From Pelomyxa schiedti (Eukaryota; Protista; Evosea), in assembly GCA_020536535.1 (NCBI GenBank), contig JAHLWZ010000924.1, positions 1-45,960 on the forward strand: a DNA stretch of 45,960 bases. The letters are read 5' to 3'. Shown here in pieces: positions 1-4,836 of the stretch. The stretch's first letter is position 1, and every line of letters begins with the position of its first letter. The notes under the pieces were generated by a model. The model was not told where the DNA came from, did not search any database, and worked only from the letters and a program-made list of their open reading frames with translations. The position numbers were made by a program, and so were the translations under genes.

Positions 1-894
1 TAAGTGTTGGTATCAGGGACAGTAACACTAGTATTGATATTTCACCCCCCTTCAAAGAAAGAATCACACCTCCGGTGCAGTTACATAACTCCTGGAATGC
101 AATGAATCTTTGTCAGAAATATATAAAGAAAAAGAGAGGGAGGGGAAAAAAAAAAAAAAAGAAAGGAACAAATAATTAAGATAGGATATATAATTAATAG
201 AGACACCAATGGGGGCAAGGGGGGAAGACCTTGCCAGGAAAAAAAAGATAGGAAAAAGAGAGAGGATGAGGAAGAGGAAGAGGAGGAGGAGGAAATACTT
301 GAAGGGATTGAGCTGCCCCCTATCCGAAACCGCTTCACTGACCACCTTCCACATGGCGTGAGGAATCAGCCCCCCGGCGGCAGCTATTGCCTTGGCCGCG
401 CGGAAGTTCCCGGCCACGAGGGCGCAGCACAGCGGGGTGCGGCCCCCCGCGTCGCGGGCGTTGGCGTCCGCGCCCAGCTTGCCCGCCAGCAGGTCGACCA
501 CCAGCGAGCGCGGGCCCTTGGCCCAGGCCGCCGCGACGTGCAGCGCCGTCTGGCCCTCCCCGTTGGGCCGGTCCGCGTTGGCCCCGGCCCCGTGCAGCAG
601 CTCCACCGCGGCGATGTGCCCGCGGCGCGACGCCGCGTGTATGGCCGCGTCGCCCGCCGGGTCCGCGGGGTTCCCTACGTTGATGGCTCGCTTGACCTCC
701 GCAGAGGGAGAGGCAGGGGCAGAGGCAGAGACAGAGGCAGGGGAGGAGGAGGAGGAGGCGAGGCCCAGGAGGGAGGAGAGGGTCTCGACGTCGCCGCGGC
801 TGGCGGCGTCCCACAGGGCGGGGCAGAACGCGGGGGGAGGCTGTCGAGGTGTCGACGGCGGCGGAGGCGGGGCTCTTCGAGGCGTGGTGGACAT
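1..894 (-). CDS. Ankyrin-repeat protein (3' end uncertain; probably continues past the left edge)
   Basis: ATG at 894. GC-rich exon 1 encodes ankyrin motifs (ALWDAASRGDVETL, GDAAIHAASRRGHIAAVELL, GQTALHVAA, GRTPLCCALVAGN). A pyrimidine-rich intron follows, then a small exon at about 70-91 (ttccag|GAG...GAG|gtgtga). The exon-1 donor and downstream frame are ambiguous. Confidence 0.85.
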
Positions 895-1033
895 ACTTTT
901 TCTTTTTACTCTTTTTTTTTTCCCGATTTTCGCGTGAACTGGCTGTTTGTGAGCCGGGAGACTCAGGGCTTCCTCCCCTGTGCAGGCCTTCTCTGCTGTG
1001 GGAACCTAGAGCTGTGCAGTGGAAGAGTGTTTT

Positions 1034-2732
1034 ATGTTCAACATTCATAGAGTGAAGCAGGCGGAGCCCTCACCCAAGTTGGCCACAATTTTCACACCGA
1101 AATTACCAGAGATGGACGTGGAGACTTGCGTGAGGTACTTTCTGTGCGAAAACAATGCGGACAAGTACGAGCCACCAAGGAACCCCAATGTGTTCAGGCT
1201 TAAGAGAGCAGCTACCGAAGTCAACATGCACATCATTAAAAAGCGGTGTGTCTCGTGTCTGCTTTTTAGGGTCTATTCTAAAGTCTTTTCCTTTCCATTT
1301 CTGAAATTCATGACATACAAAGGCTCGAGGCACTTGGCACTTTCAAGTTCTATTTCAAGACGGTGTTGGAAGGTGATGCTCCAGAAAACTTCGTATGGGA
1401 AGAAGTCATTGACGACTACACCACTCCTCTACCAATGCACAACAATTGCATATTCGTGAAAGCTCTGAGGATCGAAGACCGGTTCAAGGGCGGCGCCCGG
1501 CAGCAGCCTGGTTTCTCGGCGTCGTCTTCATCATCGGCACCTTCTTCTTCGTCGTCGTTGGATGGTGTCAAACTTCCTACCTGCTCTGGGGCTACCTCTT
1601 CCTCGCAGGCTCTAAGTTCTTCTTCGAATTCCACTACGCCAAACGCCGGGGCTTCCAGAGATCAGAGACGACATGATGTTAGGTCCAGGAGTTCTTCTGT
1701 CACTTTGAACGGTATGCATGAAACTTGCTGAGAATGGAGTTATACTATAGTCTCAGCCTAATTTAATTCAAAATGGTTTTGCAGAATCGGAAGTTAAGGT
1801 GCTCGAGCAGCTTGAGAAGACGACTCACTGTATTTTCCCTCTCCCTGTGATTTTATTTCTCTTCTCCCTGTTTTCCTCCGATATATTCTCCCTCAGTGTT
1901 TTGTCTCAGTCTCTTCGAAAGAACTCAGGTCTATGTATTCAAAATTTAAAAAGGAAGCTCCAACACTTAGTATGAAGTCGTTCTTTACTCTACTTGATTG
2001 TTATCCAACTTTTGTCTTTCAAAGGTATCGACCGTGGTGGTTTTGCTATTGTCACAGAAGGAATGGGAATTACTGTTTGTAATCCCTTTGTAAAATTCCC
2101 CTCACATTTTCTCAGGAAAAAGTTTTGCAAGAAGCTTTCTTCAATAAGGTATTTCTCTTAATTTTCCAAAATACTCCTCACCCATAAAAATAAGTTTGAT
2201 ACAGATAGAAGGTAATGTGCTCTTCATTTCTCAACTCATAGTGGCCCAGCGGTTTTATCGATTTCCCCGAATTTGTTAACGGTATGAGTATAATGACAAG
2301 AGGTACCCCTGAGGAGAAGCTGGAAGGTTGCAATATTTCCTTTGTTTTTCCCCTCACCATTTTCTTCTATCCAGCTGCCTTCCGACTTTATGACCTTGAT
2401 GGTAACTTCCTCCAAAAACAAATAACAGAACTATGAATGACCAGGCTTCTTGTAAAAGGGAATGGGATCATGACCAGAGAAGCTTTTCTTAAGATTATGG
2501 AGTCATTCAAACAACTCAGGGGTGGAGAAGTTGTTGTTCGAGGAACTACCTACACTGATGTCACTGCCCTGTGTAACCAACTCTTTGACGATGTAATTCA
2601 CTGACTATGTGATTAATTTTTAACACCCTGCTCCAGATTGATGCAGACGGAAGCGGGGGAGTTGATCTCAAAAAGTACACCGCCAATGCATTAAAGCATA
2701 TGGACGTTTTGGCAAGCTTTGGTGTGATTTAA
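1034..2732 (+). CDS. DIX-like domain fused to an NCS-1/frequenin/calcineurin-B-like EF-hand protein (multi-exon; start at ATG 1034 or 1112)
   Basis: Intron 1246-1322 joins ...[11 protein letters not shown]...IIKKR to [17 protein letters not shown]...[25 protein letters not shown] (DIX pattern). After a Ser-rich linker, short GT-AG introns give [28 protein letters not shown]...[58 protein letters not shown]...[14 protein letters not shown]...FGVI, stop TAA 2730-2732. Confidence 0.85.
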
Positions 2733-2811
2733 AATAAAACAAAAACTTTAGTTTGTTATGGCTCGATTGGTTTACAATGCACCCTATTACATTTATGAGT
2801 AATTGATTGCA

Positions 2812-4836
2812 TCAGAAGAGACCCGCTGATACACCAGACTCACAACCACATTCATCAGCACCACGCAGCATTTTAAATAGGCCATTTTCACCCCAGGTGT
2901 CTCCCATACTGTTTGGTATGAATGGAAAAGGAAAACGAGAAAAAGGTTATGGAAAAGGCAAACCTATTGACCATAAGCCAATAGGGCAGGTCATTTTCAA
3001 CTCCCCATCCAACTATCATCACAGCATGACCACCAACATCTTGTGAGGGAGAAAACAAAGAATTACTTACGACTGCTAAGGATTCTATTCACATACATGA
3101 GCCCCAGCGGTGCATGTAAACTCCGGAGCTGTAATAAAACCAATCCATGTAAAGGTTGAAGATTGAAATGACTGGCCCATTTTGCAGTATTTCTTCCTTA
3201 GTTCAGTGTTGGTACAAGAGAAGGACAAGGAATGAATACTTGAATGCTCTCTGGCGATGCATCAACAGCGTACGCAGAAGCAAATTGGTAAAATGGAATG
3301 ACAGAGCCATCCTCACAAGTTGCCTGGCAAGCTGTGGGGAATCCGGATTGTGTTGACGCACTTTTTTTGGTCATTTGATTCTCTGAATTAAGGAAAAGGA
3401 AAACCACATACTCATAGGGTAGGCAGGAGTCGAGTGTGTAACCTCTGTCAACCCCAAAGACTGTAGGGGAGTCAAATGCACCACCCCCACAGCCCCAGTC
3501 ATCTCAAAAATGGTAAGGAAAAAGTACATGCAATCCTTCACTTACAGTAGTCACATGAAACAAGGTGCTGCACAGAAAATCGTGAAGTAAAGCTGGCATT
3601 GCTGGAAATACACTTCCGCGCTTCAGCAACTTCCACTGCGGCGTGTGCCCAACAGTCGCCACAGGATGCCTTAAATCTTGTGAGTGGGGAAAAGATAATT
3701 ATGGAGAAACCTGGTTCCTTATTGACCAATTGCAGTCAGGCCACTCGTCTCTGGCATCAAAAGAGACAGGGATTACTTGGGAAGATTTATGTTGAACTTT
3801 GCCCTTCTGAGGTGCATGATATGGCAAAGGAAACATATTGAAAAGCTCCCCAGGAGACAGCCGAGAATAGTGCTGTGATAAGGGGGAGATAGAGGAACGC
3901 CATGGTGCTAGTTGCTCGGCAATAAGAGAAGGATACAGTGGTGTTCTCTGTGGAGTTGGCGGAAGAGGAAGGATTTTTTGTGCAAGTGGAGAGAGACGGT
4001 GATTGATCCACAAGTTAAGGAATTCTTTGGCATGTTCACTTTCAGCAGGCAAGCAATTACTTGGAGGAGTGAAATATGACGGTGCCACACCTGGTTGACT
4101 GTGAGTGTGCTTGGGATTGGTTGTTTGCGAAGCGGAATCACCATGAACGTAAGAATAACACTCTTCAATAAGATACTCTGAGGAATCAGTAAATGTCAAT
4201 GCCAAGTGGACAGGCGCATATGGGAACGAAATCATGCTGTAAAGGTCCGTGATAGTTGTATCAGTAGTTTCTCTGAAGATGTTGCACGGAACACCTGTAT
4301 ACAAACCGTATTATAAGTACATCTCCCAAAGACAACGTGGAGATATCGCATACCATTATAGACGATATCACCCACATACTTATAGGTGCTGAAGTTTGAT
4401 GGTGGGATTACAATGTCAGCAGAAACTTCCCAGCACAGTTCACTTCCGAAAAACCCAAAGATGAAATAGTATTTCCCCTGAAGAGAGTGGCATTGCCCAA
4501 AACATCACCTCGTTAACCCAAAACAAAAAAAAAAAAGGGGAAGAAACATGTGTTGAATCGGCGATGGTGCGCATCACATCCAGCCCTTTGTACTGGTCCA
4601 CAGTCATTACACCCTCATCCATATCAACAAACATATTCTCTTGTTCCCAATAATCCACGTGGTACCGGGGCTCTCTAGGGGAAGGGTAGTTGATGGTACA
4701 AACGTGGGTTCAGGTACTGCAATGCCGTTGTCAAGTGATACTGAGCTGGGAAAACCGGAGGGGAAGGCTCCGCCCCACATAAACCAACCGCGGCACACAC
4801 GCACACAACCAGAACACCAACCGAGTTCCGTTTCAT
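2812..4836 (-). CDS. Secreted papain-family (C1A) cathepsin B-like cysteine protease with a long N-terminal extension
   Basis: ATG 4836 starts the signal peptide [23 protein letters not shown] 43-nt intron restores the frame into [11 protein letters not shown]. Mature domain: [10 protein letters not shown]...[12 protein letters not shown] (catalytic Cys), [13 protein letters not shown] (His), [16 protein letters not shown] (Asn), [13 protein letters not shown], stop TGA 2814-2812. Confidence 0.9.

Follow-up and report, generated by a model that had tools for sequence, protein, structure and literature searches.

A DIX domain and an NCS-1/frequenin-like EF-hand module in one spliced gene of the amoebozoan Pelomyxa schiedti

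Introduction

At first regarded as confined to Wnt signalling, DIX domains were later discovered in the plant SOSEKI proteins and in protists of the stramenopile, alveolate and rhizarian (SAR) group. The domain was traced to SAR protists by van Dop et al. (2020), who detected it in neither fungi nor green algae, gave no account of Amoebozoa, and left open whether its origin was vertical or horizontal, from SAR (PMC7042713). In a later screen of eukaryotic genomes, eleven DIX subclades were distinguished, seven from animals and plants and four from SAR (Kostareli et al., 2025; PMC12077222). The SAR proteins follow a common plan, in which a DIX domain and a disordered region are followed by nothing, a kinase, ELMO or DnaJ (PMC12077222), and these four architectures were restated in a 2026 Toxoplasma paper (PMC13753751). 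SAR DIX domains polymerise in vitro (PMC12077222; PMC7042713), and hetero-complexes are known for ATHOS-DARTAGNAN and TgDDP-TgDCP (PMC12077222; PMC13753751). Here we describe a gene of Pelomyxa schiedti (Amoebozoa, Archamoebae), called DIX-NCS in the following, in which a DIX domain is joined to an EF-hand module resembling the neuronal calcium sensor (NCS) proteins. It lies on contig JAHLWZ010000924.1 of GenBank assembly GCA_020536535.1; the whole stretch analysed, positions 1 to 45,960 of the forward strand, is referred to as the window, and coordinates are window positions unless stated otherwise.

Like the SAR 'Musketeers' (ATHOS, PORTHOS, ARAMIS and DARTAGNAN/TgDDP), DIX-NCS has its DIX domain at the N-terminus and a single effector at the C-terminus, with a linker of varying length between them, and all of them occur in unicellular hosts without Wnt. 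It differs from the Musketeers in its effector, which is an NCS-like module of four EF-hands and not a kinase, ELMO or DnaJ, and in its host, which belongs to the Amoebozoa (Archamoebae) and not to SAR. This amoebozoan host is not known to have Wnt/Dishevelled signalling. In the literature found, DIX proteins come from animals, plants and SAR and carry PDZ/DEP, RGS, CH, kinase, ELMO or DnaJ partners, with no EF-hand partner and no amoebozoan DIX protein among them. Literature on DIX combined with EF-hand, neuronal calcium sensor or archamoebid names gave no description of a DIX-EF-hand architecture. The words 'calcium' and 'EF-hand' are absent from the main text of PMC12077222, and its supplementary files, when searched, contained no EF-hand, Amoebozoa, Pelomyxa, Mastigamoeba, Dictyostelium or Acanthamoeba. 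A first-pass annotation of this DNA, made from the sequence alone, had stated that no protein of this architecture was known to be described. This holds for the literature found; the protein is, however, less isolated than that statement implied, as it follows the SAR plan of DIX, disordered linker and C-terminal effector (PMC12077222). What is new is an NCS-like effector on a DIX protein and a DIX protein in a new supergroup, while the overall plan is already known from SAR.

Results

One spliced transcript joins both domains

DIX-NCS is a single gene of eleven exons on the plus strand at 1034-2732 (Table 1). Its model was built from the sequence (700-3300, three forward frames), joined by hand and checked by script. 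The coding sequence of 1140 nt encodes 379 aa followed by TAA, the frame is unbroken through all joints, and the introns measure 38-80 nt and are bounded by GT..AG in ten of ten cases. The predicted protein has three parts: a linker of about 75 residues, rich in Ser, connects a DIX domain at about aa 27-122 with a four-EF-hand, NCS-1-like module at aa 201-379. Translation may start at ATG 1034 or ATG 1112. With an in-frame stop at 1007 and the closest upstream gene beginning at 894 on the opposite strand, the DIX domain stands at the N-terminus.

The stretch was present in four public runs of one study, two single-cell RNA-seq runs (X1 and X2; labelled 'protist metagenome') and two more, and contigs of these runs were aligned to positions 850-2950. 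All ten splice joints of the gene were seen in contigs from the two RNA-seq runs (10/10). A 163-nt contig of run X1 carries the joints 1711>1785, 1829>1910 and 1969>2025 and thereby connects exon 2, of which it includes 35 nt, with exons 3, 4 and 5. Since exon 2 is one open reading frame (ORF) holding the C-terminal half of the DIX domain and the linker, a spliced contig that leaves it ties both halves of the protein together. The downstream joints, 2074>2116 among them, were seen in contigs of 404 and 437 nt from both RNA-seq runs, and over 2458-2592 the RNA contigs did not differ from the genomic sequence. Thus, the DIX and EF-hand parts sit in one spliced transcript. The in-frame splicing from a DIX domain through a Ser-rich linker into an EF-hand protein, as read in the first-pass annotation, is thereby confirmed: its junctions at 1711/1785 and 1829, across which it had suggested an RNA-seq check, are exact and both joints appear in RNA, and its range for the DIX domain (1112-1467) was right and contains intron 1, which is likewise spliced out in RNA. 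Loose contig ends at 1184 and 1436 resemble the template-switch oligo and, in our own reading, mark 5' ends of cDNA.

In the other two runs, labelled 'organism A', the whole stretch was found at 100% of sampled words, with the locus unspliced and in one piece; these runs may be the source of this DNA and so do not count as independent support. From species, method and years, the genome and the transcriptomes most likely stem from the P. schiedti single-cell studies (PMC8887013, PMC10579272). At position 2292, which falls within codon 283 (Ile) in the model of 379 aa, the X2 RNA contig reads C for A, and neither X1 nor the two runs with the unspliced locus share this change, which could be an allele, an error or editing.

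The architecture recurs in related amoebae

The same architecture was looked for in other protists, as had been suggested, and was found in Mastigella eilhardi, in a second set of sequences here called P0007, and as colinear exons on a third contig (L005). P0007 is an uninterrupted ORF of 329 aa on L004, a Logan contig of 1542 nt that lacks the introns of the genomic copy and is therefore read as a spliced mRNA. In the genomic copy (L001, a European Nucleotide Archive contig of 497 kb), introns lie at the corresponding places as far as the tblastn alignment resolves them, including one inside the DIX domain at the same position as intron 1 of P. schiedti; a separate 'FDTDR' microexon is also present. 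The Mastigella sequence (P0006) is a EukProt transcript that runs from the last DIX strand through a Ser/Thr/Pro-rich linker into the EF-hand module. Compared with P0007 over their whole length, the P. schiedti protein is 61% and the Mastigella fragment 70% identical; for the DIX parts of P. schiedti and P0007 the figure is 63%, and in the EF-hand region P0006 and the GenBank protein of P. schiedti (P0001, see below) are 68% identical over 98% of the region. By sequence, conservation of the architecture extends to at least two other pelomyxid-type amoebae.

Probably it also occurs in a fourth, more distant organism. L005, a Logan contig of 7.8 kb and 37% GC, has a DIX ORF free of introns (P0004) and, further along the same strand, NCS-like exons; joined in frame over GT..AG introns of 121, 29, 34 and 29 nt, they give a protein of 294 aa in which the linker is short, a model predicted from colinear exons. 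The putative gene (Table 1) has very small introns (29-34 nt) and none inside DIX. Directly downstream on the other strand of L005 lies an intron-less ORF of a PfkB-family kinase.

These sequences bear on the possibility that DIX-NCS is a gene-model artefact, in which the DIX/linker exon and the EF-hand exons of two adjacent genes were wrongly joined. Only one RNA contig, that of 163 nt from X1, spans 1711>1785, and coverage of the linker is low. Nevertheless, we regard an artefact as very improbable. The contig in question has its 35 nt in exon 2 and three canonical joints, one ORF runs through the DIX half and the linker in exon 2, all joints preserve the frame, and no stop or start signal separates the DIX/linker part from the EF-hand part. 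Moreover, DIX and EF-hands share one uninterrupted ORF on L004, and the Mastigella transcript spans the last DIX strand, the linker and the EF-hands.

Only four or five members of the family are known. An exhaustive phmmer search gave five matches; its query was the 59-aa DIX half only, and absence from Mastigamoeba, Entamoeba or other Amoebozoa cannot be inferred from it. One of the five, P0003 (1282 aa, repetitive), matched in five short stretches, was judged unrelated by sequence and was discarded. A word-index search with the whole of P0001 returned only P0001 and the Mastigella fragment, the Ser-rich words having probably swamped the 8000 scored candidates, and a search with residues 1-110 of P0007 returned nothing, missed P0001 itself and is uninformative on distribution. 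With the EF-hand region of P0001 (200-376) at E <= 1e-10, again only P0001 and the Mastigella fragment were recovered, and among the results no other long protein (207-658 aa) carried a closely similar EF-hand module. A scan of JGI metagenomes with the DIX family alignment gave 185 pattern matches, none of which was confirmed (0). Neighbours in the ESM Atlas formed DIX-only or EF-hand-only clusters and no combined cluster, and a cluster search of the AlphaFold database (AFDB) gave only ordinary DIX proteins.

The N-terminal domain is a DIX domain

P0001 matches the Pfam DIX family (PF00778) with 34.2 bits, against a gathering cut-off of 22.2 bits, over profile positions 2-76 of 77 and from residue 31 (nt 1124) onwards. 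Exon 2 alone also scores above the cut-off (Table 1); exon 1 alone gave no Pfam match, and the N-terminal half of the domain is recognised only together with the C-terminal half. The related sequences P0007, P0004 and P0005 score 28.7, 51.4 and 48.0 bits. When a profile of four family sequences (A1) was compared with the whole PDB, Axin came first (E 5e-7), followed by Dixin, DVL1 and DVL2, and the only match outside DIX was non-significant (E 0.5). An AlphaFold model of the domain on A1 reached a predicted local distance difference test score (pLDDT) of 81 and a predicted template modelling score (pTM) of 0.73, with the order β-β-α-β-β-β. In Foldseek, the top 24 PDB matches of this model are all DIX domains (Dvl1, Ccd1, Dvl2, Axin and SOK4), with template modelling (TM) scores of 0.70-0.81 on the target and 0.56-0.67 on the query and E from 2e-6 to 2e-3; the next folds, other beta-grasp proteins, follow at E >= 0.02 with query TM scores mostly of 0.5 or below. 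The neighbours of the domain among AFDB clusters and, by language-model features, in the ESM Atlas are DIX proteins as well. Thus profile, fold and language-model features identify the N-terminal domain as a DIX domain, in agreement with the first-pass annotation, which had proposed the Pfam search as a check.

A generic beta-grasp domain of the ubiquitin-like or PB1 type, and not a true DIX domain, would be the alternative. It is suggested by an identity of only 19-26% to solved DIX domains and by a single-sequence phmmer search against the PDB that reached only E 0.04. We consider it very unlikely, as every family member with the whole domain scores above the curated Pfam cut-off, the A1 profile has no significant PDB match besides DIX chains, and Foldseek leaves a clear gap between the 24 DIX structures and the remaining beta-grasp folds (E <= 2e-3 against >= 2e-2). 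Both this reading and that of an artefact are contradicted by the RNA joints, the L004 ORF, the Foldseek result and the family profile.

Invariant segments of the family are 'V.YF' in β1, 'P.NPN..R' in β2, 'G.F..YFK' in β3 and 'VWE' in β4, and strands β2 and β4 are the most conserved parts of the domain. The closest solved structures are those of the animal proteins Dishevelled, Axin and Dixin/Ccd1 and of plant SOSEKI, with which DIX-NCS has the fold and the tail motif of β4 in common. This tail, 'VWEE', is invariant and was aligned by HMMER to 'VKEE' of DVL (in 'VVKEEI') and 'VFEE' of Axin (in 'VVFEEV'); the aligned DVL positions are the tail residues that were mutated in the classic polymerisation mutants of DVL2. 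The head residue changed in DVL1 Y17D aligns with the Asn of 'NPN'. Judged from these alignments, the tail appears conserved and the head chemically different, yet invariant within the family. In contrast to Dishevelled, Axin, Dixin and SOSEKI, DIX-NCS has no PDZ, DEP, RGS or CH domains in Pfam scans of P0001 and P0007 and no SOSEKI-specific regions in that of P0001; the head Tyr of DVL2 is replaced by Asn, and DIX-NCS has no Wnt pathway context.

The linker and the NCS-like module

The linker gave no Pfam family match in P0001, is neither conserved nor alignable among the orthologues, where its length varies from about 25 to about 75 aa, and the equivalent stretch of P0007 is modelled by AlphaFold with pLDDT < 50. 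For these reasons it is read as disordered.

C-terminally, the Pfam scans of P0001 and P0007 returned only EF-hand families, among them EF-hand_1 with 36 bits at 290-316 of P0001. The module was compared by way of the orthologue segment P0007:150-329 (phmmer against PDB sequences). Among its single-domain matches, NCS-1 ranks first (92.8 bits, E 2e-25, covering residues 13-182 of 190), and only the sum of separate matches places a calmodulin-calcineurin fusion chain slightly above it overall. Hippocalcin (86.9 bits), frequenin, calsenilin/KChIP (80), neurocalcin, GCAP, CBL2 (70), calaxin, recoverin, calcineurin B (62) and calmodulin (57) follow. The full-length model of the orthologue is confident only in the EF-hand part (pLDDT 70-88), for which Foldseek is led by NCS-1/frequenin at target TM scores of 0.74-0.80. 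By similarity of sequence and fold, the C-terminal part is NCS-1/frequenin-like, as had been claimed.

With the NCS family (NCS-1/frequenin, hippocalcin, KChIP, GCAP and recoverin), DIX-NCS shares a four-EF-hand module about 180 aa long, in which EF1 appears disabled and has a Pro in its loop. This non-canonical EF1 loop has its Pro aligned with that of NCS-1 EF1; the preceding residue is Ala and not Cys, so that NCS proteins have Cys-Pro where DIX-NCS has Ala-Pro. The EF2 loop is canonical in P. schiedti, where it needs the microexon, and in the orthologues (P0007, P0006 and the L005 model). EF3 has Ala at loop position 12 in P. schiedti and is canonical, with Glu, in the same orthologues; EF4 has Lys at this position and is canonical in them, with Glu or Asp. 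Position 12 of the EF-hand loop is the bidentate ligand, and changing it is a standard way to kill an EF-hand. The changes in EF3 and EF4, which also set P. schiedti apart from the NCS family, therefore suggest that its protein probably binds Ca2+ at EF2 only.

In the NCS family, the module is preceded by an N-terminal Gly2/myristoylation signal; in DIX-NCS it is internal, behind DIX and linker. No candidate N-terminus, nor that of any orthologue, carries Gly2 (MFNI or MDVE in P. schiedti, MASS in P0007), and therefore no myristoyl switch is possible. The earlier view that DIX takes the place of the myristoylated N-terminus of NCS proteins fits these termini and the start of the module at about residue 201.

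A microexon skipped in the GenBank model

The fusion is already in GenBank, where an independent gene prediction on this contig yielded P0001 (376 aa, 'calcium-binding protein [Pelomyxa schiedti]'), which in the exhaustive phmmer search was 100% identical to the 59-aa DIX half. P0001 corresponds to the RNA-backed model minus exon 7, with an acceptor near 2242 used instead. It therefore reads WPSG where the RNA and all orthologues read FDTDRSG (...FFNK-FDTDRSG-FIDF), a segment carried by both P0006 and P0007. In the RNA contigs of both X1 and X2, 15 extra letters stand between the joints 2148 and 2248 and represent the microexon, the last two letters of which (AG) are ambiguous with the next acceptor. 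A simple reading of ORFs misses the microexon as well. Because it is skipped in P0001, the EF2 loop of the annotated protein is left without its first ligands. The GenBank gene model thus needs correcting, as the skipped 17 nt destroy the sole fully canonical EF-hand loop.

Neighbouring genes

Upstream, on the minus strand, a divergent ankyrin-repeat ORF starts 139 nt before ATG 1034. Its block has 60% G+C, with a sharp fall to about 46% at the DIX gene, and its final part resembles read-through into low-complexity or intron sequence. Downstream lie the convergent C-terminal exons of a papain-family (Peptidase_C1) cysteine protease, cathepsin B-like in appearance, the 3' end of which is at most about 50 nt from the stop codon of DIX-NCS. 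RNA contigs over this locus cover 2782-2910 and diverge from the genomic sequence past 2910, probably through a splice.

Table 1. Coordinates of the DIX-NCS gene of P. schiedti, its neighbours and the putative gene on L005.
Feature	Position	Strand	Evidence
Exon 1: start codon and N-terminal half of DIX (β1, β2, helix)	1034-1245	+	Pfam match; RNA contig 1184-1244
Intron 1: 77 nt, GT..AG, within DIX	1246-1322	+	RNA joint 1244>1322 (cut +1), run X1, 151-nt contig
Exon 2	1323-1711	+	
Exon 2, first part: C-terminal half of DIX (β3, β4 with VWEE, β5)	1323-1470	+	Pfam 24.4 bits; AlphaFold strands
Exon 2, second part: Ser-rich low-complexity linker, about aa 125-200	1483-1711	+	ORF continuous with DIX half
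Exons 3-6 (1785-1829, 1910-1969, 2025-2074, 2116-2148): N-terminal helix and degenerate EF1 of NCS-like domain	1785-2148	+	RNA joints; NCS-1 alignment from residue 13 on
Exon 7: 17-nt microexon, F-D-T-D-R-(S), first half of EF2 loop	2195-2211	+	RNA contigs X1 and X2
Exons 8-9 (2250-2326, 2375-2401): remainder of EF2 and start of EF3	2250-2401	+	RNA joints 2326>2375, 2401>2459
Exon 10: EF3 loop (Ala at position 12) and following helices	2459-2592	+	Pfam EF-hand_1; RNA contigs
Exon 11: EF4 loop (Lys at position 12), C-terminal helix, TAA 2730-2732	2637-2732	+	RNA joint 2592>2637
Ankyrin-repeat ORF, divergent	64-894	-	Pfam Ank_2, 70 bits
Cysteine protease, C-terminal exons, convergent	2815-3058	-	
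Putative DIX-NCS gene on L005	L005:1559-2656	+	

Discussion

We consider it fairly likely that DIX-NCS is one gene whose DIX domain clusters an NCS-like Ca2+ sensor for switch-like recruitment. Polymerisation and gating by Ca2+, which the first-pass annotation had proposed, are suggested here by what is known of the DIX and NCS families. The DIX domain would self-associate head-to-tail through β2 and β4, as in Dishevelled, Axin, SOSEKI and the SAR proteins, and would thereby gather many copies of the sensor at one site. Binding of Ca2+, at EF2 in P. schiedti and at EF2-EF4 in the orthologues, might open the hydrophobic groove of the NCS module, and helices of target proteins could be captured. 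Polymerisation would then turn weak binding at single sites into a local, switch-like recruitment of high avidity. Potentially, the DIX domain stands in for the N-myristoyl membrane anchor of NCS proteins as a device for both localisation and clustering. The logic would be that of the SAR Musketeers, with a Ca2+ sensor as the effector.

Several observations weigh against this proposal. EF3 and EF4 of P. schiedti, two of the three potentially active EF-hands, have no acidic ligand at position 12, and at most one fully canonical Ca2+ site remains (EF2), which depends on the microexon; regulation by Ca2+ is therefore less well supported in P. schiedti than in the orthologues with three canonical loops. 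At the head position of DVL1 Y17 and DVL2 Y27 the family has an invariant Asn (of NPN), and thus the chemistry of the interface is not identical. The full-length AlphaFold model, made from an alignment of three sequences, has pLDDT < 50 in DIX and linker and says nothing on contacts between the domains. The RNA support is made up of short contigs assembled from two single-cell libraries of the same study; coverage starts at 1184 and leaves out 1034-1183, the first 150 nt of the coding sequence.

Some of these points would also suit a protein in which the fusion is real, the EF-hand module of P. schiedti is a largely Ca2+-insensitive, constitutive protein-binder, and the main role of DIX is that of a heterotypic adaptor, binding other DIX proteins and not forming a homopolymer. 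The degeneration of EF3 (Ala12) and EF4 (Lys12), which is confined to P. schiedti, and the replacement of the head Tyr of DVL2 by Asn agree with this, and hetero-complexes of the kind formed by ATHOS with DARTAGNAN and by TgDDP with TgDCP offer a precedent (PMC12077222; PMC13753751). On the other hand, EF2 is fully canonical in the RNA-supported model, and three canonical loops are kept in the orthologues, so that the ancestral protein would have been a sensor. As to a heterotypic adaptor, β2 and β4 are the most conserved parts of the DIX domain, and the 46-kb window, the only part of the genome covered, holds no second P. schiedti DIX gene. Overall, a Ca2+-insensitive adaptor appears unlikely, and a DIX domain that clusters a Ca2+ sensor remains our preferred reading.

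Pelomyxa and Mastigella bear flagella or cilia. This fits the association of DIX proteins with flagellated or motile cells (PMC12077222). It is tempting to speculate, albeit only tentatively, that DIX-NCS represents an unrecognised ancient class of Ca2+-gated polymerising scaffolds, in which Ca2+ might control, or be read out through, the assembly of DIX condensates, for example at the flagellar base or the microtubular cone of pelobionts, and that DIX predates the split of Amorphea and Diaphoretickes. If this is true, the presence of DIX in Amoebozoa would argue against a gain of DIX from SAR by horizontal transfer in animals and plants. A conserved and expressed DIX protein in Archamoebae adds a fourth major lineage, within Amorphea and outside animals, and favours an old origin of the domain. 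Moreover, the DIX partners in the literature found are adaptor, enzyme and chaperone modules, whereas the partner here is a second-messenger sensor. A polymer of such a sensor suggests a simple route by which these amoebae may obtain a cooperative and spatially confined response to Ca2+.

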